A stretch of 64,000 nucleotides of DNA from Haliotis rubra (GCF_003918875.1 NW_025766747.1:930001-994000), one strand, 5' to 3'; positions 2,235-63,880 are shown, numbered from the stretch's first letter. Numbers and translations: made by a program. Notes: generated by a model from the sequence alone, not told the origin.

Positions 2235-5200
2235 ATGGACATGCGTCGGCGAAGCGACCCTCGACTCTACTTCCGGTACACCGACCCTCCTGACCCGTCG
2301 GATGACCCTCCCAGACTGTGTCTGCTTGATGTGTGCGTCAACATCGATCTGCTTGAAGCTCTCAAGGAACATCAGGACGTTAAAGGTTTGATGTCGCCCG
2401 TACGATTTCAATGAACGAAGGCGTTGACATTATTTCAGACATATCGCGGCCTTATGGAAAGCCGTTTTCACATTCATTAAGAAATACTGACATCTTAAAT
2501 TGTTTTAGAGATATCTTGAATGAAAATAGAAATATTCTGAATTCAATTGAAGATATCTTGGATTGAATTGAAGGTATCTCGAACAGAGATAATTATAGAT
2601 ATCTGCAATAAATTTCATGATATCGCGAAACGAATTAAGGATATGATGAAGCATATCAATGATATCTTGAAAAGAATTGCTGATATCTTGAAATGAATTA
2701 AAGATATATCTAATAGAGATAATGTAATTGGTATTTTGTAATATCTTAAACACATTTAGAGATATCACGAAACATGTTATTGATATTTCTGTAACATTTT
2801 GAGATATCAGTAAATTAAATGGATATCAGACATTTATTAAAGGTATTTTCAATTATGTACTGACCCTACTCTTTGCTGACAGATAACATCCTCAGACAAT
2901 ACCATCAAATCATGCACCTCTCCCTGCTGCACGGGTTTCACGGTGTGCTTTCAATGTGCAATATCTGAATAGGCACATGTGCCTCTAGTATGGACTATGC
3001 TTCACACATAATTTTCATTGCAGATTATGGCGTTCTTCTTCGCATTCACTGGGACGAGACAGGAAACCCTGATGTAGACATGTCAACCCTCACACTCTCG
3101 CAGGTACCGACTGATAGTTCCTCAGGTGTTCTCAACACTGATTACGCCATAGGAATTTCCACTAATCACACTGTCTTGGAGAACTTCATTACAAAAATGT
3201 TCGCAACGTACAATATGAAACTGGTCGCGGTTCAGTACCCTCCAATGGTGCTGACATTTAAACACGGCCTTGATTCCGGCATCAGTAGGTTAACTTCAGA
3301 TAAAACCAGACTGCATGGCTTTGTGAAAGAACTCATTACGCAGTGCACAGTCGCCAAGCACCAGATGCAGTTGAAGATAAACATGAAGAGAGGGTCTAAG
3401 GTAGTGTTGTCCCAGAGACACGCCTGTGGATGTTTTGGACATGAGCAAGGTAGCGACGGAGATTCGTGTGCTCTTCAGGCTGACAACAGCAGCCAGACGG
3501 ACGAAAACCATTATGCAAGCATGTAAGTATAAACCCAGGCATGTGAGTACCCAAGCATAGGAGTGTATAGCCAAACATGAATACCCAGTTTGACATACCC
3601 CGGTCTAAGTGAGTGAGTTTAGTTTTACACCTCACTCAGCAATATTCCAGCTTGATGGCGGCGGTCTGTAAACAGTCGAGTCTGGGCCAAACAATCCAGT
3701 CATCAACAGCATGAGCATCGATCTACGCAATGGGGATACCAATTGTCAACCAAGTCAGCGAGCCTGACCACCCGATTCCGTTAGTTGCCTCTTACGAGCA
3801 TATGAGTTACTGAAGATCAATTCTAACGGGTCTTCGCGGGTCATACCTAGTCTTAATTCAGTTGATTCAGCATGGTTCATATCTCCATAATTAAAATGAC
3901 CCTTTCTAAACTTTTTGATTTCGTATAAGAATATTTAAATATATCTAGTTTCTAAAGTGACAGTTACAATTAGTATTTGTTTATACTTACAGGTCAAGAT
4001 TTCGTATAAGAATATTTAAATATATCTAGTTTCTAAAGTGACAGTTACAAGTAGTATTTGTTCATACTTGCAGGTCAAGTCTTTCCACTATGTGCGATGA
4101 CACAATAGAAGTGGATCACAAAGCTCCATCATCGGTAGAGGTGAGGTTTAAGACCGTGGAAAGCGAACTTGCCGAGCAGCGACACTTTATGGAGTCTCAG
4201 TTCTATGAACAAAAGGGACAAAACGAGGAAATCAAAGCGGCTCTGTTACAAATATCAGATGTTTTGGCACAGAAAGGTGAACAGGAGGAATCCCGACGAA
4301 AAGAGGAACCCCAACTAGCTAAGGATATTCTTGATGAACCAGATTTAATGCAATTTTCTTTGGAAACGGAGCCATCAAAATCCGAATCTATAGGACCGCA
4401 GGATGAGAGTGAGCACCAAACAGAAGTAAAGGTGCAGGGTAAGGGAGAGTCGCAAAGTGGAGAGGAACTTGTGGAGGAAGTCAACCGACATCAAATGAGA
4501 GACGAATCAGAAGAAGAAGAGTCGAACGTAAAGGTGACAGAAGTGGAAGAAGAGAACATGGTCAGTGAAGAGGAAGAAGAGAGTACGAATGACGACGAAG
4601 AGGTTGATGTAGAGAGTGAGTCAGGGGAAGAGTATTCCGAATATCACTACCAAAAGCGCAAAGGACCTATCATCAAAGAAATTGATGGCAATGAACTTAG
4701 AAGTTTGTCTCCTCCAAGAACGGAACAAGAAATGCGTTTTAGAACTTCCAAACACAAGCCGACTGTTTACAACGGCACCAACAGTCGTTCGACTTACTAT
4801 TTAATTGGGAAATACCCACAAGCTTCACAACATAACAGTCAATCATCTGTGAAACAAAAGCAACCAACCACATACACAGGCAATGTGTACAACGATGACC
4901 TGTCAGGAGTGGATCCTTACAAGAATACAAGATATAAAACGCATACGTGTCCTCTTCATGGGAATTATTTTGCGACGCAGCAGACAGCTGCACCCCTCAC
5001 TCGACCACAAAGACAAGCTGGAAGGATGACAGGCAGCCACGCCGGGGACCTGGATGATTTTGGATTAAGTGGACCGGTAAATGAAGACCTCTGGAGTGAG
5101 AGAGACGTGTATTCTGATCTACAGACGGATGAACTGAACTTTGACATCAGCAGAAGGGATCGCCGGAAGCAAGAATCGTATACCATAGATGGGCAAGTGT

Positions 5201-8200
5201 TTTTTAATATATGTACTGTGTATTGAATGTCAAAACACTTGATATAAATGTAATGAATGCCACTGTAGTAGCAGCTCTTCCGTCACTGTAATAGCCTAGT
5301 GCCTTGAAACATCGTACCTATTTACAGATCAAGTTGTTTTAGTATTATGTGATCTAAGATGAGAAATATTATGCATATACTGACAAAGTCATTGTTTTCA
5401 GACAAGTGATAATGACCAAGACCCGACTATGCGATGAACCAAACGGAGAGCAGCGGATGCAGACACTGTTGGAGAGCATGGTTGGAGAGCAGGACAGCGC
5501 GGACAGCAGCAGAATGTGGGAGAGTGTGGCGGAAGCTCAATGTGAAGGTACCGTTATTTCCCCTGGGGCTCCACGAAGCAGACATTAAAGAACGTTTCTG
5601 GCGCACCAATTAGATGTATGCAGTTGCGCAGAGTAGTTGGACTGGTGACTAAGTTTGGCAAGCTGGATTTGTGACAGTTTCTGGGGCCTTGGATCGGCTC
5701 TACATTGTTGCAGAAGTGCAACGTCATAAGTGTTTACTTGGCAGATGAGATTTTGCGCTCTGTAAACCGCCATTATTTTTAATATTCTGATAAATATCAA
5801 CGAACAGATACAAAAATATATGTATATAGCATTAGTGAGTGACATTACAGATCTGGTCAATGCATGTTTTTGAAGCAGTAACAAACAAATTACAGACTCG
5901 AGCACTGTACCCAGCGTAGAGGCCGCCCTGGACACCGTCATCTGTATCGACACATCGGACAGCGTGAAGGGAGAAGCATTCCAGCAAATAACCACCATTC
6001 TCCACGACTTCATAAACGGTACGTTTGTACTCAGCTCCTTATGTCCCGTGATGACGTGCGGATTTTGTTATAAAAAGAAACTGGAAGCAAAGGAATTTTT
6101 TTCTTGCGAGTACTTCTTTCAGCTGGGATGCCAGCTAACCTATAACAGAGAGCTGAACAGATACACGTATTCGTTTTAGGTGGTAGTATTATTAGGCCCT
6201 TTCGGATTCATCGTTGTCAGCTCAGCTTGAATATAATGATGTACTGTAAATGAGTTACAGACAGAAATTGATTAAATTTTGTGTGGTGATGTGATAGTAA
6301 GATATGTTTGATGTACATTCAGGCATTGAGGATATCGCGGAACAATACGAAATGGAGGAAAATATCGCCCTGGTTACTTTTGGAGGTCGTGCCCGAGTGC
6401 TACACCAACTGTCAAATGACTACGGGAGTTTGAGGGATGCTATAGGTATGATGTCATGCCTTATCAGATAATGTGTGTTAATATGTAAAGTGAATGTGTC
6501 AGTCAGACGTCAGATTGTGTTTGCTTTCTTTGCTCTGAATGCATATTTAGAGGTATCCTGTTCTTGTGTATATCTAATGTGTATATGTTTGCCACCCAGA
6601 TACCCTGAAGCCAGGAGGGCCATCCCCGCTGAATGAAGGGCTTCTGGTAGCGATGACGTGCACAGGAAGAGGTATGTACAACGCCGTCACCTACATGGCC
6701 GGTATATCGTTAGATGGGGTACACTTTGACGGAAGTTGTCAACCCTTAGTCTACATAATACATTTCAATTCTATGTAATCATATCTGCTGTCTGTATCTT
6801 AGTAAGCAGATTCTGTCGTCCTGTTTGATGGGCATTTTAGAAGTTGAGTTGATGAAGAATAATGACAATTATATGGATATACAACTTCTTTTATTCTGTG
6901 GAGGCGACGTTTCGACATAGGTTTTCATGCTGGAATATGTTACTATTTGTCTTCAGAAGACATACTTAACATCAGAGGGTGTTCATGCTGGAATATGTTA
7001 CTATTTGTCTTCACGAGGAATACTTAACATCAGAGGGTTTTCATGCTGGAATATGTTACTATTTGTCTTCAGGAGGAATACTTAACATCAGAGAGTTTTC
7101 CTGCTGGAATATGTTACTATTTGTCTTCAGAAGAAATACTTAACATCAGAGGGTTTTCATGCTGGAATATGTTACTATTTGTCTTCAGTAGAATTACTTA
7201 ACATCGGAGGGTTTTCATGCTGGTATATGTTACTATTTGTCTTCAGGATGAATGCTTAACATCAGAGAGTTTTCCTGCTGGAATATGTTACTATTTGTCT
7301 TCAGTAGAATTACTTAACATCAGAGGGTTTTCATGCTGGACTATGTTACTATTTGTCTTCACGAGGAATACTTAACATCAGAGGGTTTTCATGCTGGAAT
7401 ATGTTACTATTTGTCTTCAGGAGGAATACTTAACATCAGAGGGTTTTCATGCTGGAATATGTTACTATTTGTCTTCAGAAGAAATACTTAACATCAGAGG
7501 GTTTTCATGCTGGAATATGTTACTATTTGTCTTCAGAAGAAATACTTAATATCAGAGGGTTTTCACGCTGGAATATGTTACTATTTGTCTTCAGAAGGAA
7601 TACTTAACATCAGAGGGTTTTCATGCTGGAATATGTTACTATTTGTCTCCAGGATGAATACTTAACATCAGAGAGTTTTCATGCTGGAATATGTTACTAT
7701 TTGTCATCAGAAGGAATACTTAACATTTTCATGCTGGAATATGTTACTATTTGTCTTCAGAAGGAATACTTAACATCAGAGGGTTTTCATGCTGGAATAT
7801 GTTACTATTTGTCTTCAGTAGAAATACTTAACATCGGAGGGTTTTCATGCTGGAATATGTTACTATTTGTCTTCCGAAGAAATACTTAACATCATAGGGG
7901 TTTCATGCAGGAATATGTTACTATTTGTCTTCAGAATAAATACTTAACATCAGAGGGTTTTCACGCTGGAATATGTTACTATTTGTCTTCAGGAGGAATA
8001 CTTAACATCGGAGGCAGCCTGAAACTCCCACCAAGATTTATAATCATCACGGACGGTCTGGCCACAGGCACACTACCAGAGGCTGCGCAGGATGGACATG
8101 TGACTAGTGAACAGGTTAGCCCATTGATAATGCCTAGACATGGACTTGTGTACGGCTATGCTGGTGTTATAAACCGTTACGTGTCAATTCCACTGTTTCA

Positions 8201-11200
8201 GGAGAAGGCGGTCCTGACCCACACATTCAGCCAGTTGAGACAGAGACAGCCCGGGGATTATGTGCCACACCCAGTTGTGGTGGTCCCAGTGGGTCGGTCC
8301 GATATGGTTGGTACATTGTTCGTGAAGTTATGTGTAAAGATGAATAACCATCTTTAACTATATCAACCCGTGAAGGTCCGGGTTAGAATGTGCCTTGCTT
8401 TTAACCCATGCTTGTCGTGCGAGGCGTCTAACGGGATCGGCTGATCAGGCTCCCTTACTTGGTTGACATATGTCATCACTTCCCAATTGCGCAGATCGAT
8501 GCTCATGCTGTTGATCACTGGATTGTCTGGCCCAGACTCGATTATTTACAGACCGCCGCCATCAAGCTGGAATATTGCTGAGTGAGGTGTAAAACTAAAC
8601 TCACTCACTCACTTTAACTGTATCATGTTTAGTTGCATTGTGACAGTGTACCATTAAGGTATCATACGTTTGGGCTTTTAGAAAACAATTGCTATGGAAA
8701 GCAAATTTACAAAAGAGAATGTGGGTATATCAACCATGCACGGTATCAGTTTGCCATATGTGGTTCAACCAGAGAGATATTAAAAAAGTAAGCTTCAAAA
8801 ATATGTACTGCTATACGTTACCTCGAGGAAGAATCTCCATGGCCTCAATACTTTCAAAGAAAGACATTCTGATTTCCCACTGTATAAACCATGATCAGCT
8901 ATATCATATATCTGAAATTGTTTAAACGGGTTTCGTTGGGAGTGGATATTTATTACAACACGTGACATGTAATCCCTCACCACCTTGCTTGACATTTTCT
9001 ATTTGATATATTCCCTGTTCAACTGTTAATCATTCCCCACCCAGAGTTTCCTGCTGTCAATGGGAAGGCTATGTGGAGGTATGCTGATTGAGGGCAGCGC
9101 CATCAGGAAGCTCTGCCGACATCAACGGCTGCATGTAAGTAGAGATGTTCAGACACCTGATATAATTGATCACATACTACTGACATTTGCCACTAAACGG
9201 ACACATCCGTGCTGTTTGTTTTTATTTCTGAATTACCTTTGTAGAAACTTGCTGGGGATTCCTTGGAACTGATCAGAGACAAACGCATGGACTCTGCCAT
9301 GTTTGAAGACTTGAGGTCAAGGCAACTGACCATCCAGCTTTCACCCGATACTAAACAGGACGAGATGGTAAGCTAAACGATGTGATATAAAGGAAGTTTA
9401 TACATTCGATGGTGTAAGGCGTCAAGAGTCAAGTCAAGAGAAATGCACACAACTCTCGCCACACATAAGTTATGTGGGATGCATTTATATAATTAGCTGA
9501 ACATCATGTGACGAGAGTAACCAGTGATGATGCGGTCAGGAATCAGCAACCCATGCTGAGTAATGGAATCATATGGTGTAGCTCACTGACTTGTTTCCAT
9601 TTGCATAGTTGCATCCTCATGTCATCCTCGAAGTCATTATTTTCAGACCGTCGTCGTATTGGTGGGATATTGATACGTCTAACAAGAAACGAACAAATAA
9701 AACCTTGCTTAAAAAAACCTCTCCAGAGCACAACGTTTAATGCCACTGTACATCAGCGTACATCCCTTAGTGACTATACAACATTTACTTGTCTTTCTCC
9801 GCTGTGATGTTGCTGGAATAATGCTAAAAGCAGCGTGAAACTAAACTCACTCACTCACTCACTCACTCACTCACTTGTCTTTCTGACAAGAAGATACAAC
9901 CTGATTAATGTCATAACAACTGCTTGTCTTCAGGAGGACGTTAGAGACCTTACACAGGAACATCTATACAAAGTGGCCATTGTTTACGGTTCCAAATACT
10001 CGTTTGCGAACATATACGAAGCTCCAAGTCTCCCCTCTTTGGGTACACGAGTAGTGCGCAGCCAAGACTGGGTGTGGGGCAACCAGGATACGGAAGGGGC
10101 GGGAACGATCATTAATCACGGACTGGACGCCAGTAAGTCGCTGTATTGAAACCAGAATCCTAACAGTTTAGATAGATTTGTAACAGTCGGTTATTGTTTA
10201 TCGCAAATGACTGACAATCATGACAACCCTGACGGTATTTACCAAAACACTTTAAGTATATCGAGGGTTATATCATAATATTTCATTACATAGGATTATG
10301 GGGCGTTTTAGAACCGTCCACCGTTTGTCATCTCTGATGCTTAATAGTTTTCGTTGTACTAACTACGTCATCTTATTTACTGCCAGAGTACGTGTGGGTA
10401 TACTGGGACAGCGGCCATCTTAATGTGTACAGATTTGGTCAAAATGGATGCTATGACGTCACTGAGGTACATGACCAACCGCGAGTCCTGGACGGCGGCG
10501 GAAACGTTGACGTCGGCTTGCAAGTAGAGAGAGGTCAGAGGCTGAGACAAAACAATGAAGTTAGATAACGTGTATATAGGACGACCATAAAGCCAAATAC
10601 TTGTGTTCATTATGCGCACTTTCTACGTAACGTTCGTACCTTTCCTTGATCAGGCCCCAAATGTCCACATGTCTGACATATCTGACGACACACATAAGAG
10701 GTGGGACGTATATCAACATGAAAATACCTTTCAGTTATTCGATGATACGTGTAATATGTATGTCCATATGCTGGGGGTATGTCAGGACACTTCTGATTCA
10801 TATCACGACACATATGGGTTATGTCAAGTTACATGTGGAGAGGTTGGGTAGCCTAGTGGTTAAAGCGTTCGCTCGGGTTCGATTCCCCACATGGGTACAA
10901 TGTGTGAAGCCCATTTCTGTTGTCCCCCCCCCCCCTCTGGAATATTGCTAAAAGCGGCGTAAAACTAAACTCACTCACACACTCACTCAAGTTACATCTG
11001 ATTTATATGACGATACACATGAGCTATACGATGATACATCTGATTCATATGACGATACATCTTAGTCATATGACGACACATCCAAAGTATGTAGTAGTTA
11101 TATTAATGACTGTCCATACCAGGTCCTGATTGGCACATGACGTATGGAGACCAGGATGGCGGTCGTGGCGGTACAGGTGCCATCATCAGAGTAAACATGG

Positions 11201-14200
11201 ATGGGAAAGTCATGGTAGGATGTGTCGCCATTCAACCATGTAATGTGAACTGTCTATAAGACAAATCTATTAGTAACAGTTTCTGGGACACATCAAACAA
11301 ATGTGTAAATTTGCACAAGTAAATTAAAGACAAACGTCGTCCTCTGTCTTTTTTAGTCATTTAACATAATATATGTTTAACGGGGACGGCCCTCTGTCAA
11401 CAAAACACAGCAGCGAGAGAGAGAGAGAGAGAGAGAGAGATCATATTTAAAAGTTATTGCAAATGGATTTTACAAAGCTTAATAGACATTAGTGAGGTTG
11501 ATATTCTACACATAAGCTCTTCTGTTTTGTAGGTGCGGTGGCAGAACGGAAATATATATGTATACAGGTTCGGGGAAACCAACAAATTTGATTTATCTAT
11601 CCGGTGAGTTCTCCGAAACGTATCCTTTCTTGTGAGTCGCTCCTCGCCCGGTTCACCTTGTTCGCCTTGTTACCATCCGTATGTCACGGTTCATGTCCGA
11701 CATGCCAGTTCGCCTTCTTAATTGGAGTTCAATGGGTTTGATTCTTGAGGGATATCTCTTAAGTACTGTTGAAAGCAACGCTGAACCAAATTAGCTATCT
11801 CTCACTTTCACAGAGATCCTGTCGCTTGTCTTCTTGAGTCAACAGCTAAACCAGATGGTGAACAGCCAGCAAGACATGAACAGTTGTCGAGGACTGGACC
11901 AGGTACGTCTGGTAGATAGTATGAACAGTTACCTTTCACTGGACCAGGTACGTCTGGTAGATAGTATGAACAGTTTCCTTGCTCTGTACAACAAGGTAAC
12001 ACTGGTAGATAACATGAACAGTTACCTTTCACTGGAGCAGGTATGTCTGGTAGATAGCATGAACAGTTTCCTTGCTCTGAACAACAAGGTAACACTGGTA
12101 GATAACATGAACAGTTACCTTTCACTGGAGCAGGTACGTCTGGTAGATAGCATGAACAGTTTCCTTGCTCTGAACAACAAGGTAACACTGGTAGATAACA
12201 TGAACAGTTACCTTGCACTGGACCAGGTACGTCTGGTAGATAGCATGAACAGTTACCTTGCTCTGTACAAGAAGGTAACACTGTTAGATAACATGAACAG
12301 TTACCTTTGACTGGAGCAGGTACGTCTGGTAGATAACATGAACAGTTACCTTTCACTGGAGCGGGTACGTCTGGTAGATAACATGAACAATTACCTTTCA
12401 CTGGACCAGGTACGTCTGGTAGATAACATGAACAGTTACCTTTCACTGGAGCAGGTACGTCTGGTAGATAACATGAACAATTACCTTTCACTGGAGCAGG
12501 TATGTCTGGTAGATAGCATGAACAGATTCCTTGCTCTGAACAACAAGGTAACACTGGTAGATAACATGAACAGTTACCTTTCACTGGACCAGGTACGTCT
12601 GGTAGATAGCATGAACAGTTTCCTTGCTCTGAACAACAAGGTAACACTGGTAGATAACATGAACAGTTACCTTGCTCTGTACAACAAGGTAACATTGGTA
12701 GATAACATGAACAGTTACCTTTGACTGGAGCAGGTACGTCTGGTAGATAACATGAACAGTTACCTTTCACTGGAGCAGGTACGTCTGGTAGATAACATGA
12801 ACAGTTACCTTTCACTGGAGCAGGTACGTCTGGTAGATAACATGAACAGTTACCTTGCTCTGTACAACAAGGTTACACTGGTAGATAACATGAACAATTA
12901 CCTTTCACTGGAGCAGGTACGTCTGGTAGATAGCATGAACAGTTTCCTTGCTCTGTACAACAAGGTAACACTGGTAGATAACATGAACAGTTACTTTTCA
13001 CTGGACCAGGTACGTCTGGTAGATAGTATGAACAGTTACCTAGCACCGTACAACAAGGTAACACTGGTAGATAACATGAACAGTTACCTTGCTCTGTACA
13101 ACAAGGTAACACTGGTAGATAACATGAACAGTTACCTTTCACTGGACCAGGTACGTCTGGTAGATAGTATGAACAGTTACCTTGCACCGTACAACAAGGT
13201 AACACTGGTAGATAACATGAACAGTTACCTTGCTCTGTACAACAAGGTAACACTGGTAGATAACATGAACAGTTACTTTTCACTGGACCAGGTACGTCTG
13301 GTAGATAGTATGAACAGTTACCTTCAGCACCGTACAACAAGGTAACACTGGTAGATAACATGAACAGTTACCTTGCTCTGATCAACAAACAGTAACACTG
13401 GTAGATAACATGAACAGTTACCTTGCTCTGTACAACAAGGTAACACTGGTAGATAACATGAACAGTTACCTTTCACTGGACCAGGTACGTCTGGTAGATA
13501 ACATGAACAGTTACCTTTCACTGGAGCAGGTACGTCTGGTAGATAACATGAACAGTTACCTTTCACTGGAGCAGGTAAGTCTGGTAGATAGCATGAACAG
13601 TTACCTTGCTCTGTACAAGGTAACACTGGTAGATAACATGAACAGTTACCTTTCGCTGGACCAGGTACGTCTGGTAGATAGCATAAACAGTTACCTTTCA
13701 CTGGACCAGGTACGTCTGGTAGATAACATGAACAGTTACCTTTCACTGGAGCAGGTACGTCTGGTAGATAGCATGAAAAATTACCTTGCTCTGTACAACA
13801 AGGTAACACTGGTAGATAACATGAACAGTTACCTTTCACTGGACCAGGTACGTCTGGTAGATAGTATGAACAGTTACCTAGCACCGTACAACAAGGTAAC
13901 ACTGGTAGATAACATGAACAGTTACCTTGCTCTGTACAACAAGGTAACACTGGTAGATAACATGAACAGTTACTTTTCACTGGACCAGGTACGTCTGGTA
14001 GATAGTATGAACAGTTACCTAGCACCGTACAACAAGGTAACACTGGTAGATAACATGAACAGTTACCTTGCTCTGAACAACAAGGTAACACTGGTAGATA
14101 ACATGAACAGTTACCTTGCTCTGTACAACAAGGTAACACTGGTAGATAACATGAACAGTTACCTTTCACTGGACCAGGTACGTCTGGTAGATAACATGAA

Positions 14201-16036
14201 CAGTTACCTTTCACTGGAGCAGGTACGTCTGGTAGATAGCATGAACAGTTACCTTTCACTGGAGCAGGTAAGCCTGGTAGATAGCATGAACAGTTACCTT
14301 GCTCTGTACAAGGTAGCACTGGTAGATAACATGAACAGTTACCTTTCACTGGACCAGGTACGTCTGGTAGATAGCATGAACAGTTACCTTTCACTGGACC
14401 AGGTACGTCTGGTAGATAACATGAACAGTTACCTTTCACTGGAGCAGGTACGTCTGGTAGATAGCATGAAAAATTACCTTGCTCTGTACAACAAGGTAAC
14501 ACTGGTAGATAACATGAACAGTTACCTTTCACTGGACCAGGTACGTCTGGTAGATAGCATAAACAGTTACCTTTCACTGGAGCATGTACGTCTGGTAGAT
14601 AACATGAACAGTTACCTTTCACTGGAGCAGGTACGTCTGGTAGATAGCATGAACAGTTACCTTTTACTGGAGCAGGTACGTCTGGTAGATAACATAAACA
14701 GTTATATTTTGCTTGACGAGAAACGTCTATTAGATAACATGACCAGTTACGCATTCGATAAAGAATTAATCTGGACATATGGAACTGATATGTTTGATGT
14801 ATAGCATGTTGCCATGTGACCTGCAGAACAACACATAGCCCGAGTGGCTGACAGCTATCTGTGGCAGAGGGAGGACAAGCAGCGAGGGTGGCAGGACTAC
14901 TCTCCGTCCGACAGTGACAGAATAACTTCAGCCTACAAGAAACGTTCTGAAGGTTCTTGCCTGCTTCAGAGAAACAATGAAAGGTGACAACATTCCTTGT
15001 CATTCGGACATTGCTATGTGAGGGAATATCACAGAGTCATATCGTAATTTACAACAATGAAAGGCGATAACATTCCTTGTCATTCCGACATTGCTATGTG
15101 AGGGAATATCACAGAGTCATATCGTAATTGACAACAATGAAAGGTGATAACATTCCTTGTCATTCCGACATTGCTATGTGAGGGAATATCACAGAGTCAT
15201 ATCGTAATTGACAACAATGAAAGGTGATAACATTCCTTGTCATTCGGACATTGCTATGTGAGGGAATATCACAGAGTCATATCGTAATTTACAACAATGA
15301 AAGGCGATAACATTCCTTGTCATTCCGACATTGCTATGTGAGGGAATATCACAGAGTCATATCGTAATTGACAACAATGAAAGGTGATAACATTCCTTGT
15401 CATTCCGACATTGCTATGTGAGGGAATATCACAGAGTCATATCGTAATTGACAACAATGAAAGGTGATAACATTCCTTGTCATTCCGACATTGCTATGTG
15501 AGGGAATATCACAGAGTCATATCGTAATTGACAACAATGAAAGGTGATAACATTCCTTGTCATTCCGACATTGCTATGTGAGGGAATATCATATCGTAAT
15601 TTACAAGAGTCATATCGTAATTTACAAGAAGGCCAAACATCATACTGTTTCAGTGAAACCTTAAATCAGAAGAACAAATCTTTATCCTGGAAACGGTATC
15701 ACTAATGCATCACAGTCTCTCATACCACCTTTCACAGGGATGTTGCCATTGCCATATGGGCTTCTAAATGTTTTCTTTTCCACCCTTAGCTACAGAGTTA
15801 TGTTCAAGTCTATGCAAGAAAAGTCAATTACAAACCAGTCAACCGTTCGGATCAGGAAACGAGCTATAGGTAATGTTTTGAAGGCCACACACAATTGATA
15901 CATGTATTGGAAAATACATAGATAACTCACATGTGCACATTCTGATTCTGTGATGTGGAAACAATAAGTATTATTTGACCAATAACCATAATAGACTTTC
16001 TATTAATTATTTCAAGGCATTCTTCCTAAATCTTAG
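2235..16036 (+). CDS. Gene 1: multi-exon N-terminal domain / coiled coil / VWA / 2x MIB-HERC2 / WWE protein, about 1175 aa
   Basis: Manually spliced exons: 2235-2385, 3024-3522, 4074-5192 (GC donor), 5402-5547, 5896-6018, 6323-6445, 6600-6671, 7993-8114, 8202-8306, 9045-9134, 9245-9367, 9934-10132, 10387-10533, 11123-11214, 11533-11603, 11814-11902, 14827-14983, 15790-15869, 16017-16036. All phases join into one open frame of 3528 nt. Motifs: VWA LDTVICIDTSDS..ENIALVTFGG..FIIITDG; MIB/HERC2 GTRVVRSQDWVWGNQD..VYWDSG and VERGPDWHMTYGDQDGG..VRWQNG; WWE YLWQREDKQRGWQDYS. The start codon and the last micro-exon are less certain. Confidence 0.85.
2505..2850. repeat. Degenerate AT-rich tandem repeat with recurring GATATC
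   Basis: GATATC(T)TGAA-like motif recurs roughly every 20-25 bp. Confidence 0.55.
3608..3841 (-). mobile_element. SINE-like dispersed repeat, family A (about 245 bp, TCAC tail)
   Basis: Reverse complement of the element at 8366, 29741 and 45650 (ACCCGTGAAG...GTCGTAAGAGGCGACTAACGG...TAAAACTAAACTCACTCAC). Confidence 0.85.
3917..4078 (+). repeat. 81-bp tandem duplication that includes the splice acceptor of gene 1 exon 3
   Basis: Two near-identical copies ending TACTT(A/G)CAG|GTCAA, with AG at 3991-3992 and 4072-4073. Confidence 0.9.
6920..8012 (+). repeat. 59-bp minisatellite, about 18 copies; the last copy is the acceptor plus the first ~20 nt of the exon at 7993
   Basis: Unit GGGTTTTCATGCTGGAATATGTTACTATTTGTCTTCAG|GAGGAATACTTAACATCAGA. 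Confidence 0.95.
8366..8612 (+). mobile_element. SINE-like family A with target-site duplication
   Basis: Full copy flanked by CTTTAACTATATCA / CTTTAACTGTATCA. Confidence 0.9.
10835..10986 (+). mobile_element. Short tRNA-derived SINE (family B) sharing the 3' tail of family A
   Basis: A-box-like TAGCCTAGTGGTTAAAGC, B-box GGTTCGATTCC, tail GGCGTAAAACTAAACTCACTCAC, TSD TCAAGTTACAT. Confidence 0.8.
11415..11440. repeat. (GA)n microsatellite
   Basis: Seen directly. Confidence 0.95.
11875..14750 (+). repeat. Intronic minisatellite of interleaved 45-bp and 48-bp units (about 60 copies) starting at the exon 11814-11902 donor
   Basis: Unit A ATGAACAGTTACCTTTCACTGGACCAG|GTACGTCTGGTAGATAGC; unit B ATGAACAGTTACCTTGCTCTGTACAACAAG|GTAACACTGGTAGATAAC. 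Confidence 0.95.
14974..15627 (+). repeat. 80-bp minisatellite, about 8 copies, starting at the WWE exon donor
   Basis: Unit ACAATGAAAG|GTGATAACATTCCTTGTCATTCCGACATTGCTATGTGAGGGAATATCACAGAGTCATATCGTAATTGACA. Confidence 0.95.
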
Positions 16037-45894: not shown

Positions 45895-46820
45895 CTGAAT
45901 GAATGTAAACATTGCTTACACACGACCGATCTATGCGTATTGCAGACTGTCAGACAGAGAGGAAGTTTGATGATATCGAGGAAAATCTGAAGGCTCAAAG
46001 AAGCGTCATTGAGGCGAAGTTTGAAGAACAGCGATCCCAGAACGAGGAGATTAACACCACGCTGAAAACGCTCATGTCCTTCGTGCAGCAGAAAATAAGC
46101 ACAAAACAGCCAGAGAAAGGCGCCGCTGAGACCTCACATCCGTCTGGGTCGCCTAATTTGGACACTGACGGTGACACTCATCTGGCATCTACCTCAGAGG
46201 GAGGTCAACCTGACAGTGGTGGAAGAAAGGAGGACATTGTCGCCATGGCTCATGTAACTAACTCTGTAGGCCCAGTGAATGTACGCGGAAGCCAAATGGA
46301 ACCCGAGATTGATACGCTGGAACAGTTGGGCCAAAATCAGGAAACAACAAGAGGATACTGACCAAGAAAGCATTGCCCGTCAACACATGGTACAAGAAAC
46401 CAAGAGAACATGGAAAACCCGTCAAGTGATAGTCGTTTGAAGCTGGATGACAAACTGTCGAAGAATGGAGTTGGAAATCCTTTGTCGAATGTAAAATTAT
46501 CTGAGGTGCAACGTCAGGAAGGTCAATGGAATCCTGAGGACTGTATGTATGACGTCCTTTTCCACAGACAAGCACCACTATCGACTTCCGGGAAACCGGA
46601 GAAACAGCAGAAACCTTCATCAACTACTGATGTAAAACGGTGAGATCCTGGGGTATATATATGGTAAGGCATTTAGTACGAATATATTAATGATGAATGA
46701 ATGGGTATATCTGGAAATAACATGCTTTTTGTTGCATCAATATACTAACCAAAACAACTATGATATGATATGTGGTTATTTGTTAAACTTCGTTCTCTCA
46801 ACCATTTAAATTTATCTTAA

Positions 46821-53685: not shown

Positions 53686-53756
53686 ACATGATTGTGATAA
53701 CTATCATGAATTGTACGTCCAGAAGCTCATTTCCACATTTATGTCCACTTAACTAA

Positions 53757-54287
53757 GTTGCCAGAGACTATAACTTTAACGTATATGTACTGGTATTGCC
53801 AGAGACTATAACGTTAACGTATATGTACTGGTATTGCCAGAGACTATAACTTTAACGTATATGTATATGGTATTGCCAGAGACTATAACGTATAACGGTA
53901 TTGCCATATAACTGGTATATGCCTGGTAGAGACTATAACGTTAACGTATATGTACTGGTATTGCCAGAGACTATAACTTTAACGTATATGTACTGGTATT
54001 GCCAGAAATGTACTATAACTTTAACGTATATGTACTGGTATTGCCAGAGACTATAACGTTAACGTATATGTACTGGTATTGCCAGAGACTATAACGTTAA
54101 CGTATATGTACTGGTATTGCCAGAGACTATAACTTTAACGTATATGTACTGGTATTGCCAGAGACTATAACGTTAACGTATATGTACTGGTATTGCCAGA
54201 GACTATAACTTTAACGTATATGTACTGGTATTGCCAGAGACTATAACGTTAACGTTAACTATAACTTATATGTACTGGTATTTACAG
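53757..54287 (+). repeat. 38-bp minisatellite, about 14 copies, ending in the acceptor of the gene 3 exon at 54288
   Basis: Unit GCCAG|AGACTATAAC(T/G)TTAACGTATATGTACTGGTATT; the last copy reads TATGTACTGGTATTTACAG|. Confidence 0.9.
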
Positions 54288-55582
54288 CTACAGAGTACTT
54301 ACAGAGTACTCTTCAAGGAAATGTTTGAGAAGGATTTAAATAATGAATCCAGAAGAGAAGTCAAGAGAACATGTAAGTGATATTTGTTTTGCTCACTGCA
54401 TGTATTTCCGAACAAAATCTAAATTAAATCCTGGTTGACTTTTAATTTTTATCTTGCATTTATTTGCAGGTGTTGACGAGAAGTGATTCCACCTTCCTGA
54501 TAGTTTTAGATGTGAGTCATTGAAGAACAGTTGTCTATGATGAAATGTGAGGCAGCTCGCAGGAAATTGATGGTATGCTACGTTAACGTCAGTGTCTGCC
54601 CACAGCTGGTTACAACGACAAAACAATGCGTCCCAGTTATCTACATGAGACTTTGTCCTTTTTGTATAATCTGCACATTTGATCTGAATATGATATTTGC
54701 GTGGAATATCAAATTTAGGGCGATCTAAGATAGTCTCGCTTTTTTAATATTTTAATTACAGCTTTCTTACACTACGATAATATTATTGCCTACTTTCTAC
54801 TCTTAATACATTGTTGCATCTCTACTTGCTAAATATAGCTTACTACCTTAAAAAGATTTTAACACTTAATAAAAACGTGAATTATGAGAGATTGCTTATG
54901 TTATAGTGACTCATTCAGGACAGTCATCGTCCAAATATTTTAAAAGTCCATAACCTATGTAGTCCAGATATGTGAGACTTTATTGTAATAATTTATATGA
55001 CGCTAACCTGTATTCTTAATCACTACTGTACATCCTTATCATTACCGCATTGTACATTGACTTGTAGGCCCAATAATTATTGTATAAGCTTTTTATAACC
55101 TTCATTGGTAATCCCCCTTGGCCGTGTCTGCCATCCCATCAACTGGTCAAGGAAGTGCTATTGTTTTTCTGCCTGTCCATTGATGCGTCGTCGCCTGTCC
55201 ATTGTTGTCAAAAACTGTATATATACTTAGTATGCTCACATCTAGACAGTGAAGGAGTCGAGTCCGGTATACCGCCTGCTTGTGTAAGGACGACCGCGAG
55301 CAGGATAATGCCGCTCGTAGGATCCGTCCTGGGGTTGAGCAGGTACTCCGCTCACCACATTTTATGTCTTGTGTATTTGCTTGTCATGTAACTAAAGAAG
55401 TTTGAACTCAACGTACCCTTCGTCTTATCAATGTATTGCACGTACACTTAATCTTAAACATGAGCTAATTCCCGAGACGACGCATACACCAAGCGTTGAC
55501 ACTTACTTGGCACCGAAATCAGATATCTTGAGGGAGAGCTTATTTTCTATTTGTTGCAACGTCGCACTCAATGTCAACAAAT

Positions 55583-56606
55583 ACGTGTATATATACATGG
55601 GTAAATGTCTACATGTACGTCGTATACCAGGCATATATCCACAATGATATGTCTATAATGGTGTATGTGCGTACATATACATGGGTACATGTCTACATGT
55701 ACGTCGCATACAAGGCATATATCCACAATGATATGTCTATAATGGTGTATGTGCGTACATATACATGGGTACATGTCTACATGTACGTCGCATACAAGGC
55801 ATATATCCACAATGATATGTCTATAATGGTGTATGTGCGTACATATACATGGGTACATGTCTACATATACGTCGCATACAAGGCATATATCCACAATGAT
55901 ATGACTATAATGGTGTATGTGCGTACATATACATGGGTACATGTCTACATGTACGTCGTATACAAGGCATATATGTAATGTAATAGAATATTTATATAGC
56001 GCACATATCCACGCACTAGTGCATGCTCAAGGCGCTGGTATTTTTTCCCTCGATCATTGGATATCCACAATGATATGTCTATAATGGTGTATGTGTGTAT
56101 ATATACATGGGTACCTGTCTACATGTACGTCGTATACAAGGCATATATCCACAATGATATGTCTATAATGGTGTATGTGTGTACATATACATGGGTACCT
56201 GTCTACATGTACGTCGTATACAAGGCATATATCCACAATGATATGTCTATAATGGTGTATGTGTGTATTTATACATGGGTACCTGTCTACATGTACATCG
56301 TATACAAGGCATATATCCACAATGATATGTATATAATGGTGTATGTGTGTATATATACATGGGTACCTGTCTACATGTACGTCGTATACAAGGCATATAT
56401 CCACAATGATATGTCTATAATGGTGTATGTGTGTACATATACATGGGTACCTGTCTACATGTACGTCGTATACAAGGCATATATCCACAATGATATGTCT
56501 ATAATGGTGTATGTGTGTATATATACATGGGTACATGTCTACATGTACGTCGTATACAAGGCATATATCCACAATGATATGTCTGTAATGGTGTATGTGC
56601 GTACGC
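55583..56606. repeat. 84-bp tandem repeat, about 11 copies, interrupted by an ~85-bp retroelement tail at 55975-56059
   Basis: Unit ATATCCACAATGATATGTCTATAATGGTGTATGTG...TACAAGGCAT. The insert reads AGCGCCTTGAGCATG...GCGCTATATAAAT(ATTAC)n on the minus strand. Confidence 0.9.
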
Positions 56607-58649: not shown

Positions 58650-58849
58650 NNNNNNNNNNNNNNNNNNNNNNNNNNNNNNNNNNNNNNNNNNNNNNNNNNN
58701 NNNNNNNNNNNNNNNNNNNNNNNNNNNNNNNNNNNNNNNNNNNNNNNNNNNNNNNNNNNNNNNNNNNNNNNNNNNNNNNNNNNNNNNNNNNNNNNNNNNN
58801 NNNNNNNNNNNNNNNNNNNNNNNNNNNNNNNNNNNNNNNNNNNNNNNNN
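58650..58849. other. Assembly gap (N run)
   Basis: N characters. Confidence 1.
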
Positions 58850-59125
58850 AATAGTTCCACCTTCTGGTGACAAACGAATGATGTAAACCAAGTCTAATAA
58901 CGTGGGACGCAAGTAGACATGTTATTTGAAGAAATCATTCCTAAATAGGTTGATGTGCTCAGAAAAGGAATTTGGCGAATTATTAGGAATGGCAATTTGG
59001 TTGATAATCAGTAATCAACACCTTTAGACCTGTTTTATAGATTCAAATATACATGTAGATCTTAGAATGCAATATTTTGTATCCTCATAGGATATGACAG
59101 ATAAAAAATATAGTTTTTTTCTTAC

Positions 59126-59229
59126 ATGACTTTTGTCCACTTGATCCACTTTCCCAATTGTCAGTCCGTCTGTTATGAGGATAAGTCGAGGGGGCACAGT
59201 TGTCCTCCCACCAAAGTTACAAACTCCAC
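59126..59229 (-). CDS. Isolated exon of an inverted paralogue (VWA exon carrying the TDG motif)
   Basis: The minus strand reads ttccag|GTGGAG...AGTCAT|gtaaga and encodes GGVCNFGGRTTVPPRLILITDGLT, homologous to gene 2 GGICNMGGLLVPPRIVFITDGLA, with the same phase 1 to 0. It lies on a contig of about 430 bp between two N gaps. Confidence 0.75.
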
Positions 59230-59278
59230 CTGGAAGTGTGATGATAACCTTTATTAATAAATCATTATGGTAAATGAA

Positions 59279-59461
59279 NNNNNNNNNNNNNNNNNNNNNN
59301 NNNNNNNNNNNNNNNNNNNNNNNNNNNNNNNNNNNNNNNNNNNNNNNNNNNNNNNNNNNNNNNNNNNNNNNNNNNNNNNNNNNNNNNNNNNNNNNNNNNN
59401 NNNNNNNNNNNNNNNNNNNNNNNNNNNNNNNNNNNNNNNNNNNNNNNNNNNNNNNNNNNNN
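59279..59461. other. Assembly gap (N run)
   Basis: N characters. Confidence 1.
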
Positions 59462-60330
59462 CACTCCCGCCAATACGTTATCGCATCTATATATAGATCC
59501 AACTTAACTATCTATTTTTAGTCAAGGGTTTCCCAAGAGGAATGTAGTATCGTTTTCCACTTGTTTATTTCTATTTACACTCCAGGATGTTGTATGGGAG
59601 AATATTATGTCCTGCTTAACAACGAGGTGAGACTGGAATATAACGACCCATATTAACATCATCAGTGACATATTGAGGAGGTGAGAGATGTCCAAATCTG
59701 TTGTTCAAACGAAAAGTAGCCATAGCCACAAGCAGCTAGTTAGTGCTTTGTTTAATTCGTTTTTATGATACTGATCATATTTATTAGATACTTATGAGGA
59801 TCTAATTTTCATACATGAATGTGTATTGGGTGGTTTTGATATACATAACCAGGAAGTAAAAGTGAACGATATGACCGAATATCTACTTGAAACATAATGT
59901 TGTCAATCTGTATTTAATAAGGACATCACGCGTCCTATCTAAACAAAGACTAGTCACCCGATGTCCCACGAAAATATTTGTCATTTCGTATATTGGCACA
60001 TTTAAAAGGAAGATCTGTTCTCCTCTCAATACCGTTTACAGAGCACTATTGTGTAAGCTGATACAACACAAACACACGCACACACACGCGCACGTACACA
60101 CACAAATATACACATATATTAAAATCTACAGCGACATTACTTGTACAATACATGTAGGGTTATAGCCTTTTAGCCGTGTAACCTCTCACGTGACAATCTG
60201 TTATTTGCTTCCTGATACACCTGTTATAACTCTGTGTTTTCTGTCCTTGGTATAACTGGGATTATAACAATCGTCACTAACCTACATGTGCATGCAGTTA
60301 GTAAGTTAACTGTTTGCCACAGTCAGTAGA

Positions 60331-60541
60331 GTGTGTGAGTGAATTTAGTTTTACAACTGTAAATAATCGATACTGGACCAGACAATCCAGTCATCAACAG
60401 AATGAGCATCAATCTACGCAATTTCCATACGATGGCATGTGTCAACCAGGTCAGAGAGCCTGACAACCCGATCCCGTTTGCCGCCTCATACGACAAGCAT
60501 TAGTTACTGAAGATCGATTCTAACCCGGATCCACATGGGTT
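60331..60541 (-). mobile_element. SINE-like family A, internally deleted, with target-site duplication
   Basis: Reverse copy flanked by ACAGTCAGTAGA on both sides. Confidence 0.85.
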
Positions 60542-61054
60542 ACAGTCAGTAGAAATCCTTTGGGGTTAGACAAGGTCAATATCAGCTGATAAATGGGATT
60601 TAAGAACGAACTACCATTAGTCAGACACAGTATAGCAGTCCTTGTTTTGAGCACTTAATGCCGAACACCAGGCACAGTGACTGATCAACCACTATCTGTA
60701 GCCGGTGTGACGCGAAACACCGCTCGTCAGTCCACTTGAATGCCGTGTCAACCAGACCCCGGGTGAAGTTAGATCATCAGCAATCCATGTCGCGACAATC
60801 GATAGAATGGATAGATGTCATGGCGATATGGTGGACAGAATATCATCGTCCCCGAGACGTTGATCACAATATCAATCACTGGTTTGTCTGCTTAAGTCTT
60901 GATTATTTACACCATGTGTTTGTCAAATAAACACATTTAAATATGATTTATATATGAAATAAAATATTTGACTTGTAATAATTTAGATGACCATGGAGAA
61001 AATGCGTAACAGATAAACTGCTGCTTCCTACCTGATCCCTACAGTATTCACGCA

Positions 61055-61205
61055 TGAGCGGGTGAGGCGGCTGACTTTGTGTGCTGGCGATTAGGTGCCT
61101 GACTCTGAGGGTGTGGGTTCGAATCCCGGATGGGACTCTACCCAACAAATGTACAAAATCTGTACTTTACTGAGAAAGTGTAATCCCAAATATACCATAT
61201 GTTAC
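61055..61205 (+). mobile_element. tRNA-derived repeat directly upstream of the gene 4 start codon
   Basis: B-box GGTTCGAATCCC; no clean cloverleaf; a related copy lies at 420-552 on the minus strand. Confidence 0.55.
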
Positions 61206-61289: not shown

Positions 61290-63880
61290 ATGGCAAAGAA
61301 GGTATCACATAAAGCCAGCAACACCGACGTGACGTATACTAACTACACGGACCATAATATCATATCAACGTCAACACATTCCATTCTCCAAATGGGAAAC
61401 ATTTGTACAGCCTACACCATCAACGTCACCCGGGACTTCTTGGACGCCATCAAAGACAAAGGTGGAAGTCTGACGTGTGAGTTACATTTTCCATATTAAT
61501 GATTATATTTTGAATTGGCTCATTAATGATTTATCATTTGTGTATGTAGAGGGTAACGGTAGTGTGCTTATACAAGGGAGGTATTAGCGTTCAAAACCTA
61601 TCAACACAGTAGGAAGTCATAATTGTATGTATGTGTGGTGAATCTACTACTGTGAACCACGCTATCAGGATGACAATTTCCAGCCAAATGTCGTACCTCG
61701 CTATGTGTAAATGTATCTCATCGACATTCTAAGAAGGGAACAATGACACCTTCACCCCCCCAAATGTCAATATCAGTTTCAGGGTCGGAACAACCACTGC
61801 TACGGCTGAATTGGAAAGGAAACATAGACGTCTCCCAAGCCTGCATCACGAAGTGGAAGGTGAATGTATTGTCAGTTTTCAAGGGATGTAAGAGTGCGAT
61901 TCTGCAGGAGATCTCCAAAGACATATTTGATCCTCTCCGCCGAGAGATCATCGAACGAATATATCAAGAGCACGACGCCCTGCTGTCAGCTTTACTTGGT
62001 GGAAGTTTGATATTTGTGTTCATGCACAGAAACAGAAATGATGCAGATAAGATGATCGAGAAGAAACACGAGATAAACAAGATCTTCCAGCAACTCATCG
62101 GAAATATTGGCAACAGGGAGGTTAAGTTTGCTCTGTCTGCTGAAAGGTAAGAAATCTTTACCCCTTTCTTTATATTGTATGATAGCAATGTTCAACAGAA
62201 ATCAGTACAATTTGCAAACGCGTTCCGCTGCATGTATTAAATCTATACGTGCATGGAAATTAAGGGATATAACCTGTTCTGTAGCCAATTCCAACGTTCA
62301 ATTACGCATATACTGTGTGTCCTTTTGCATTGCTTTTCTGACAAGGTAGGCACAACACGTTTCCTTTTTTATTGCATGAAGTAAACTGGATACGTTATTG
62401 TCGACTTCAAGGGGACCGTTGTACAAAACAACCTTTGCTGAGGTTGGATTGAGCGACTATGGTTAACCTTAATGTAATCTTAACAAAACGTTACGTCCGT
62501 TGCACAAAGCTACCTTTGGTCAACCTTAACTCTGGGAGGGTATTTAGCGGCAACGTTAACTAAGGCTGAACTGTAGTGCAGGAAACTCGATGATGTCCGT
62601 AGTTACGGTTGTGAGTTATCTCCTCGCCGGAACAATTAATGGTTTGAATGTGTATCGCACCTGTTTTGGCATCAAATTAACGTACGTAAAGAAGAATATT
62701 TCATAACACAAATATATGTTTTAGGATAGGATTTGTCTATTTGGCTATTGCTCCTCATAAATATACAAGGATCGATCCAAGAAGATATCAAAATATTGAT
62801 GTAAGGTTTGTCCAAAGGAAGATGTGTCATGGCTCAAATATATTTTTTATCATTCTTGTAGAATAGAAATAAAGTTACGGTTAGCTATCATGTCATCACA
62901 ATCTTTTCTTTCGAATATAAATTGATTTTATTATCAACAATGAATAAATCGTTAAACGTTTGTTACAAATGGACACCTGGTCTATCGTTATACATCATTG
63001 TTTTGTCCATAAAACGGCATTAACACATTAAATGAAAAGACAATTCCTTTTAAACTATGTGCATATTCAGTTCGTAAAATATATCAATCATTATCATTAA
63101 GATTGTCAGTTTTACTTATAAGGTTAAATTAATCGGTAGTATTAGCAACTGATGCAAGACCTCGGGACTTTGGACTTTCAAACAGAAGGCTTGGGGAACA
63201 ATATGCATGTACAGTTAACTATATACATCCCGAGCGTTCGGTGCTCTACGGCAGCAATCCAGACATGTCCCTAGACACTTACAACAGGGTGTGATCTGTG
63301 TCAACTATGTTCTTTGATTTTCAAGGGATGTCGGGTCACGACAATGGATTCAAAGTTCGGTTGAGGGTAAGGAATTTTTGGTGACTTCCTCAAATCACGG
63401 CACTTTTGTTAAATATGTTTCCAATTTGAAAAATATGGGCACTCTTATATAAAATATAAGTGTATATATATGTAGAATACATGTTTCGAATTTGGGGTAC
63501 TAGATATCGATTTTGTTCCACATGCATACTTCTGTTAAAGAACCCAGTGGGAATTATCCATCGGATGACAGAAGCGAGTCACACATACCGAGTAGCAGGA
63601 TTGACGGTATTGAGATGGAACTGAAGCAGCTTCGAGAGGCAGTGTCTGAAATGAAGAACATACTGCAGAAAATGTCGGACAAGGTCCTCAGCGAAACTCA
63701 CGCGTCGAAGTTCACACCAATGAGTCAGACAGAAGAACAGCTGACGACCATTATACTACCGGAGAAGTACAGTCTAGATACTTCTATAGTTCCAGTACCA
63801 GATATACCTGTGGCACCAGCAACCTTATCTGCGCCTGGGCCTTTCGTTGACACACGTGCAGCAGAAGATGGTGTCATGGG
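61290..63880 (+). CDS. Gene 4 (5' part only, continues past the window): probable fourth paralogue, showing the N-terminal domain and coiled coil
   Basis: Exons 61290-61476, 61783-62146, 63326-63366, 63541-63880 with end phases 1, 2, 1, 2, the same as gene 3. Exon 1 ends INVTRDFLDAIKDKG (gene 1: VCVNIDLLEALKEHQ). Exon 2 starts PLLRLNW (gene 1: VLLRIHW). A coiled coil SRIDGIEMELKQLREAVSEMKNILQKM follows. No VWA, MIB or WWE exons fall inside the window. Confidence 0.7.

Follow-up and report, generated by a model that had tools for sequence, protein, structure and literature searches.

The 64,000-nucleotide window of the Haliotis rubra genome analyzed here (GCF_003918875.1 NW_025766747.1:930001-994000, with positions counted from its first letter) carries four tandem paralogues on the plus strand, genes A to D, whose products join a VWA domain, two MIB/HERC2 domains and a WWE domain in a protein without a recognizable enzyme domain. 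Our findings suggest, with a probability of about 0.5, that they belong to a family, specific to molluscs and tandemly expanded in abalone, of large soluble proteins that act as scaffolds or adaptors and not as enzymes. To our knowledge, MIB/HERC2 and WWE domains have otherwise been described as components of enzymes such as E3 ligases and PARPs. An expanded, conserved family that uses them beside a VWA domain bearing a metal-ion-dependent adhesion site (MIDAS), with no enzyme domain, points to a reader or scaffold role that is unstudied in any organism. The genes were already predicted in RefSeq, where they are unnamed, and the individual domains are known; the enzyme-free combination and the N-terminal domain (N-domain) are new. 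The analysis also corrects the split annotation of gene C and the misleading “MIB2” and “HERC2-like” names under which some relatives are filed.

The window is part of a 1.35-Mb scaffold, and several RefSeq models, retrieved among Haliotis proteins with a profile built from the N-terminal exons, align to it residue for residue with canonical splice sites (Table 1). Genes A and B are complete, with 20 exons each and unbroken open reading frames of 1089-1190 amino acids, and gene D is partial. Gene A has two isoforms, X1 of 1190 amino acids and X2 of 1170 amino acids, the latter starting at the ATG at 2235, and a single GC donor (exon 4074-5192). The RNA-like runs of study P1 contain a 0.25-0.26 share of the words in 2200-12000, a stretch in which exons account for 0.34; this fits a spliced gene A transcript without proving one.

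Exon sizes and intron phases are common to genes A, B and C over about 15 exons, and the sizes and phases of gene C alone correctly picked the splice sites of A and B over that span when checked against the RefSeq mapping. The conserved phases described in an initial annotation, which had been made from the DNA alone, are thus borne out. That annotation also counted three full genes and the start of a fourth; four paralogues are indeed present with D partial, but only A and B are intact, gene C being damaged in the assembly. Similarly, the exons of its spliced models map to RefSeq proteins, although 5' coding exons were partly missed in every gene. Each gene has an additional 5' coding exon in which the N-domain starts (A 2220-2385, B 27397-27536, C 41768-42014, D 61290-61475). 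The ATGs at 2990, 27974, 44743 and 61743 were rejected as N-domain starts, the first two strands being encoded by these upstream exons.

Within gene B, the RefSeq isoform X2 skips 60 nucleotides (20 amino acids) inside the linker exon, at about 29247-29306. The skipped segment is flanked on both sides by the short repeat GAAACCAGT, and no GT..AG or GC..AG intron is found at these 60 nucleotides, which could represent a deletion allele or a non-canonical splice.

The proteins are organized as an N-domain of ~175 residues, a short helix, an acidic disordered linker, a VWA domain, a three-helix linker, two MIB/HERC2 domains and a C-terminal WWE domain. The domain order proposed initially was recovered by Pfam both on single exons (VWA, a split MIB_HERC2 and WWE) and on full-length RefSeq proteins, where matches lie well above the cut-offs. 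Out of 17 full-length family proteins, VWA_2/VWA was found in all 17, MIB_HERC2 in all 17 (as two stretches in 14) and WWE in 16. The same 17 proteins gave no RING, HECT, PARP, ZZ or ankyrin match. With no RING, HECT or DTC match in Pfam among 18 full-length proteins, the family falls outside the E3 ligases of the Mind bomb, HERC2, HECTD1 and Deltex type, and with no PARP catalytic domain match it falls outside the PARP family.

An AlphaFold model of the last 601 residues of protein A (mean pLDDT 81) predicts, in order, a beta/two-helix lead-in, the VWA domain, the three-helix linker, two MIB barrels, a short helix, a disordered loop and the WWE domain, with no extra fold beyond the VWA, MIB and WWE modules. 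The family proteins end 2-5 residues past the WWE domain (2 in protein A). The description of the architecture as catalysis-free therefore holds for the Pfam searches and for this model. The absence of an obvious signal peptide, also proposed at the outset, agrees with a hydrophobicity scan in which N-termini were polar and no 19-residue window resembled a transmembrane segment.

The VWA domain (30-59 bits for Pfam VWA_2 in family proteins) contains the MIDAS motifs D-x-S-x-S, GGxSP and TDG. Among 39 family members, the columns D88, S90 and D196 are invariant, the second Ser is found in the majority, and GGxSP is conserved. A VWA fold with a complete MIDAS is shared with the extracellular CMG2/TEM8 and with the intracellular Rpn10, TFIIH p44 and INTS14, for which Foldseek template-modelling scores, normalized by target, are 0.65-0.74. 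Sequence identity to these proteins is only 15-17%, however, and none of them joins a VWA domain to MIB and WWE domains.

The MIB_HERC2 match (PF06701, gathering cut-off 33.5 bits) reaches 80-103 bits in the 14 proteins with two stretches. A single stretch was found in P0061, P0062 and P0063, and the last two fall under the cut-off. Scores for half-domains on single exons are low because introns split the domain. The MIDAS and MIB core residues are invariant from gastropods to bivalves, and the motifs singled out in the initial annotation are upheld by the alignment: the Asp residues of DxS and TDG are invariant, and LGTRVxRGPDWxWGNQD and WQW..W..Y are conserved.

The closest known counterparts of this module are the MIB domains of Mind bomb 1 and 2 (MIB1, MIB2) and of HECTD1 and HERC2; the likeness lies in two MIB/HERC2 domains with the signature GxRVxRGPDWxWGxQD...WDxG..N.YR. 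PDB sequences match at E 1e-9 (MIB1, 4XI6) and 7.5e-7 (HECTD1), and the best Foldseek match is the Mind bomb 1 MZM-REP structure. Unlike these proteins, the family lacks a ZZ finger between its two MIB domains as well as REP, ankyrin, RING and HECT regions, and possesses VWA and WWE domains instead. Two relatives are nevertheless misnamed in databases, as “E3 ubiquitin-protein ligase MIB2” in Magallana gigas (P0060) and as “HERC2-like protein 3” in Mizuhopecten yessoensis (P0065), both without a ligase domain. Differential-expression studies citing either name may in fact concern the present family.

The WWE domain scores 35 bits in gene A and 21-42 bits in most relatives (PF02825, gathering cut-off 21.1 bits). 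The gene B exon scores 17 bits, under the cut-off, but is alignable throughout with the family. Searched against the PDB, the family WWE profile finds DTX1 (E 9e-13), ZAP (1e-7), TRIP12 (9e-7), PARP11 (3e-6) and also HUWE1. The C-terminal WWE fold is thus shared with DTX1, TRIP12, HUWE1, RNF146, ZAP and PARP11, but the abalone family has no catalytic partner domain.

These relationships invite a different interpretation, in which the proteins would be trans-acting substrate receptors or decoys for ubiquitin ligases, their MIB and WWE domains bringing targets to, or shielding them from, a separate RING or HECT enzyme, in development or housekeeping and not in immunity. The MIB pair is nearest to the Mind bomb 1 MZM region and HECTD1, and the WWE domain to Deltex, TRIP12 and HUWE1, all of them E3 ligase parts; on the other side, the proteins lack the ZZ finger, ankyrin block, RING and HECT of those ligases, and the window contains no E3 gene. 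We consider this interpretation unlikely, also in view of the distribution and selection data described below.

Using word-dependent searches, from which absence elsewhere is unproven, we found the VWA-MIB-MIB-WWE module only in molluscs. It occurs in the gastropods Haliotis, Littorina, Batillaria, Babylonia and Nucella and in bivalves including oysters, scallops, Mytilus, Mya, Mercenaria, Mactra, Potamilus and Dreissena, some bivalve forms being without WWE. The best matches past the family are true MIB2 proteins, which align in the MIB domain only. At least nine family loci lie on the same 1.35-Mb H. rubra scaffold, so the view of a lineage-expanded family advanced initially fits both the copy number and the gastropod and bivalve range. 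At least nine tandem copies at 20-50% identity would be unusual for a core developmental factor, and this, together with the mollusc restriction, argues against the ubiquitin-receptor alternative.

Genes A and B have orthologues of 74-93% identity in H. asinina, H. cracherodii and H. rufescens. Gene A orthologues are 81-93% identical per folded domain versus 69-79% in the linker, which by sequence comparison indicates purifying selection on the folded domains between species. Such ordinary purifying selection is equally expected of substrate receptors for ligases. Paralogues, in comparison, are only 20-28% identical in the N-domain and 38-63% in the VWA and MIB domains. Because orthologue identity is high and paralogue identity low, the duplicates are judged old and constrained, and the alignments characterize them as sub-functionalized copies and not as a fast-evolving tip.

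For the N-domain of gene A, AlphaFold predicts, with core pLDDT >90, a beta-alpha-beta-beta-alpha-beta unit of the RRM/ferredoxin-like type that is preceded by four strands and a short helix. DSSP splits each of the two main helices of this unit in two, possibly corresponding to kinks reported in TRADD-N. Identity among the four window copies is 19-23%, and the alignment shows W60 and H131 to be invariant. The initial annotation had envisaged a variable N-terminal output; what we find is one homologous domain of ~175 residues, 20-28% identical between paralogues and 81-89% between orthologues.

An exhaustive profile search of 1.84 billion representatives returned only 22 proteins, and those looked up were all from Haliotis. 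A richer profile also finds the N-domain in the homologues from Batillaria, Babylonia, Littorina and Nucella, again at the N-terminus. In H. rufescens, LOC124128465 (P0012 and isoforms) has four tandem N-domains followed by ankyrin repeats, the fourth copy giving a marginal DUF6572 match (E 0.0012).

Foldseek against the PDB, VIA-align against 48,161 chains and an ESM Atlas shape search identified no specific family for the fold, the family's own Atlas cluster being the one specific match in shape. Searched at E up to 5, Pfam, PF09034 and PF20694 included, matched none of 22 N-domains and 9 further N-terminal regions; outside the family, neither a PDB profile search (E up to 10) nor a word-indexed profile search turned up a relative; and a language-model search with the oyster N-terminus returned nothing. 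Language-model neighbours of two paralogues that are ~20% identical to each other are clusters carrying PF20694 TRADD-like_N, with scores of 0.92/0.91 and 0.84.

TRADD-N domains are characterized by a tiny residue followed by Ser or Cys (G-[SC]) in the beta2-beta3 turn, and their lineage expansions have been surveyed, gastropods being reported with the NCOA6 orthologue only (Kaur et al. 2021, PMC8195603). In our alignment this turn reads GGS, SGS, CGS, NGC or DGC in the gene D clade (8 of 45 sequences) and x-Pro in the rest, including genes A, B and C. Further possible points of likeness to TRADD-N and TRADD-like_N (PF09034, PF20694) are the RRM-like core with DSSP-split helices, the N-terminal position, membership in a multidomain, lineage-expanded marine-invertebrate family, the PF20694 language-model neighbours and the paralogous ankyrin-repeat architecture. 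On these sequence and model comparisons the N-domain may be kin to TRADD-N, at roughly even odds.

The same data bear on an alternative in which the N-domain would be an ACT/RRM-like sensor of a small molecule or RNA and the VWA-MIB-WWE half its output, recruiting downstream proteins. Fold searches gave only generic RRM, ACT, ferredoxin-like, eIF4E-like and xRRM matches, the invariant W60 and H131 would suit a ligand pocket, and the four tandem N-domains before the ankyrin repeats of LOC124128465 would be compatible with this arrangement. We regard it as improbable, considering that the language-model neighbours are TRADD-like_N and not ACT or RRM and that no ribonucleoprotein (RNP) motifs were seen.

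Under the scaffold or adaptor interpretation, the C-terminal half would act as a multivalent reader: an acidic residue on a partner protein would be held by the MIDAS, a short peptide by the MIB pair, in the manner of Mind bomb 1, and a nucleotide-type ligand by the WWE domain. The helix would oligomerize the protein, and the N-domain, possibly a divergent adaptor of TRADD-N type, would relay the signal to partners specific to each paralogue. Other lineage-expanded adaptor families of marine invertebrates make an immune or stress role plausible by analogy. Herpesvirus and Vibrio cause losses in farmed abalone and oysters, which makes an expanded family of adaptors a reasonable candidate for a part in immune or stress signalling.

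A narrower version of this interpretation is a mollusc signalosome scaffold that combines a divergent TRADD-N-type adaptor, an oligomerizing helix and a three-part reader (MIDAS, MIB pair and WWE), with the gastropod WWE domain retuned by a Gln-to-Glu change to a ligand other than ADP-ribose. We hold this version to be quite unlikely in its full form; if true, it would extend TRADD-N expansions to gastropods and provide a natural example of a WWE domain with switched specificity.

Several observations count against the scaffold or adaptor interpretation, beginning with the WWE pocket. In all solved WWE-ligand structures a Gln hydrogen-bonds the adenine, accompanied by a stacking Trp/Tyr and a phosphate-binding Tyr and Arg (PMC11269756). 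Read against those structures, our alignment has Glu in place of this Gln in every gastropod member aligned, Arg in place of the stacking Trp in genes A and B, and Phe in place of the phosphate Tyr in gene B. At the neighbouring Asn, all aligned gastropod members have Ser, Ala or Asp instead, and the pocket Arg position is variable among aligned members. Bivalve members, in contrast, retain the Trp, Tyr, Gln and Asn of the ADP-ribose pocket, as in the DTX1, TRIP12, HUWE1, RNF146, ZAP and PARP11 group.

By this alignment the gastropod domains depart from canonical WWE domains that bind ADP-ribose or poly(ADP-ribose). Because of the Gln-to-Glu, Trp-to-Arg and Tyr-to-Phe replacements, canonical ADP-ribose reading by the abalone WWE domain is doubtful and may have been lost or changed. 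Of the link to ADP-ribosylation suggested in the initial annotation, the WWE fold stands but the reading function is in doubt. The natural Gln-to-Glu and Trp-to-Arg changes offer a direct test of WWE ligand specificity.

Other points in the same direction concern the helix, the pace of evolution and prior knowledge. A conserved amphipathic helix begins exon 4074-5192 of gene A, with paralogue similarity there limited to about 50-60 amino acids; it precedes a linker of ~350 amino acids that is acidic, Ser/Thr-rich and of low complexity (14% E, 10% S, 8% D) and has no Pfam match. The coiled coil proposed at the outset is upheld as a conserved helix of ~50 amino acids, but its coiled-coil character is putative, derived from the residue pattern, and a crude heptad scan of helix and linker was not decisive. 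No arms-race signal was detected, the N-domain being as conserved between orthologues as the other domains. Finally, RefSeq labels the genes “uncharacterized protein,” and literature searches for the architecture and the locus names found no paper, in agreement with the initial failure to recognize a named gene.

Transcription is best documented for gene C. Transcript contigs of up to 4305 nucleotides, from three small runs of one study, contain 13 GT..AG joints over 47700-53600, all of them equal to RefSeq gene C exons, and none of the 13 is present in an H. rubra DNA run. The possibility, raised with the initial annotation, that transcripts do not join these exons into one mRNA is thereby answered for this part of gene C. 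A transposable-element insertion in an exon, suggested by a TA..TC joint at 52153/52665 and high DNA depth there, was considered and rejected, since the contigs are explained by a normal GT..AG intron (52157-52666) and a synonymous T>A single-nucleotide polymorphism at 52154. Contigs also reach 53099 instead of the exon end at 53092; no downstream exon starts with GTAAAGA, and the 7-nucleotide overrun is most simply an aligner extension into the letters of the next exon, 5 of 7 matching.

Two lesions are seen in gene C: an in-frame TGA in the disordered-linker exon, on account of which RefSeq divides the gene into LOC124280406 and LOC124280405, and an 11-nucleotide tandem duplication with which the final exon opens. 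If the annotated acceptor is used, the duplication causes a frameshift that replaces the last WWE strands with 12 unrelated residues. The ancestral reading (YRVLFKEMFEKDL...KRTCK) persists in another frame, nearly identical to the orthologues. These orthologues (P0057 and P0051), 1118 amino acids long in H. asinina and 1114 in H. cracherodii, each span both halves as one protein. Gene C is transcribed and spliced yet damaged in this assembly, and the lesions may be fixed, polymorphic or assembly errors.

Such lesions, together with an orphan exon between assembly gaps and introns packed with minisatellites, would suit a cluster made up for the most part of lineage-specific DNA in decay, with predicted proteins that do little or nothing. 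We judge this highly improbable: genes A and B have intact reading frames with canonical splice sites and orthologues at 74-93% identity, the MIDAS and MIB core is invariant across gastropods and bivalves, and transcripts are present.

Table 1. Coordinates of genes, exons, domains and other features in the window.
Feature	Position	Strand	Basis or remarks
Gene A, LOC124280402	1170..16272	+	P0023/P0001 mapped exactly, residue by residue; Pfam on P0001
Gene A coding exons 1-10	1170-1214, 2220-2385, 3024-3522, 4074-5192 (GC donor), 5402-5547, 5896-6018, 6323-6445, 6600-6671, 7993-8114, 8202-8306	+	
Gene A coding exons 11-20	9045-9134, 9245-9367, 9934-10132, 10387-10533, 11123-11214, 11533-11603, 11814-11902, 14827-14983, 15790-15869, 16268-16272	+	
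Gene A N-domain (P0001 about 11-173), exons 2220-2385 and 3024-3522	2220..3522	+	Alignment; AlphaFold; fold searches
Gene A helix, linker and pre-VWA exon (5402-5547)	4074..5547	+	No Pfam family
Gene A VWA exons (P0001 about 650-830)	5896..8306	+	Pfam VWA_2/VWA; alignment; AlphaFold/Foldseek
Gene A tandem MIB/HERC2 (P0001 about 930-985, 1003-1060)	9934..11603	+	Each interrupted by introns; Pfam MIB_HERC2 80 bits, 2 stretches
Gene A WWE exons (P0001 about 1101-1168)	14827..15869	+	Pfam WWE 35 bits; family profile against PDB
Gene B, LOC124280404, isoform X2 of 1089 amino acids	26963..37823	+	P0040 mapped exactly, in two parts
Gene B coding exons, first ten	26963-27072, 27397-27536, 27990-28410, 28752-29660, 30028-30182, 30499-30621, 30718-30840, 31063-31134, 31361-31479, 31646-31750	+	
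Gene B coding exons, rest	32098-32187, 32610-32729, 32852-33050, 34544-34690, 35369-35457, 35743-35813, 36320-36411, 37403-37562, 37743-37823	+	Plus a tiny unplaced terminal piece
Gene C, LOC124280406 and LOC124280405	41768..54339	+	Exact protein mapping; spliced contigs; orthologues P0057, P0051
LOC124280406 exons (402 amino acids)	41768-42014, 44762-45251, 45419-45474, 45946-46361	+	
LOC124280405 exons 1-9 (701 amino acids)	46410-46639, 47355-47477, 47629-47696, 47830-47925, 48263-48382, 48473-48595, 48721-48795, 49133-49254, 49475-49579	+	
LOC124280405 exons 10-18	49789-49884, 50595-50717, 51032-51260, 51487-51633, 51894-51985, 52083-52156, 52667-52746, 52942-53092, 54288-54339	+	
Gene C in-frame TGA, disordered-linker exon	46359..46361	+	Same frame open on either side (45946-46639)
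Gene C 11-nucleotide tandem duplication (TACAGAGTACT x2), start of last exon	54289..54310	+	Comparison with orthologues P0057, P0051
Gene D, 5' part only, remainder past window end	61290..63884	+	tblastn P0003 (95-98%), P0005 (64-83%); splice-site phases
Gene D exons	~61290-61475 and 61767-62146 (N-domain, GGS turn), ~63541-63884 (helix and linker)	+	
Isolated inverted VWA exon	59126..59260	-	On 429-bp island 58850-59278 between gaps
Assembly gaps, spacer between C and D	58650-58849, 59279-59461		Gene limits
SINE-like repeat copies	about 3635-3800, 8366-8590, 17526-17873, 27009-27137, 29730-29985, 36762-36975, 45609-45899, 60305-60500	both	

The window has a guanine-cytosine content of ~40%, abundant tandem repeats and two N gaps, both of which sit between the end of gene C (54339) and the start of gene D (61290), so no exon of genes A to D crosses a gap. 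What had been described as an inverted fifth fragment is indeed a family VWA exon on the minus strand, but it is a lone exon on an island flanked by these gaps, and neither its position nor its orientation can be relied on. The peptide that it encodes is the same as that of the corresponding exon of LOC124280408 (P0055), a paralogue at another place on the scaffold, and a search of 54400-61200 on both strands found no further family exon.

Intronic minisatellites abut exons of genes A, B and C at 3917-4079, 6920-8014, 11893-14750, 14973-15591, 34963-35371, 36974-37377 and 53758-54255. In five of these arrays, those for which copies of the repeat unit were counted, the unit includes the adjoining exon's own splice junction. 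For instance, 32 copies of a donor-like CAGGTA[CT]GT follow the gene A exon 11814-11902, while 14 copies of an acceptor-like TCTTCAG precede the exon at 7993, and the donor of exon 14827-14983 recurs in 6 copies. In gene B, the acceptor of the exon at 35369 is present in 6 copies, and 16 copies of TGTAT[CT]AG precede the exon at 37403. The two-copy repeat at 3917-4079 includes the acceptor of the gene A exon at 4074, and the array at 53758-54255 precedes the last exon of gene C.

A satellite of 6.3 kb between genes A and B (18373-24685) has periods of 59/119/178 nucleotides and a strong C-over-G skew, and a 1-kb satellite after gene C (55587-56604) has an 84-nucleotide period. A dispersed repeat of ~150-250 bp resembling a short interspersed nuclear element (SINE) occurs on both strands, mainly in introns of the family genes, and ARAGORN found no tRNA-like part in it. 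Fragments with the reverse-transcriptase zinc-binding family zf-RVT (E 8e-7) at 26137-26892 on the minus strand and 40468-40728 on the plus strand are likely remnants, lying between the genes, of a retrotransposon without long terminal repeats.

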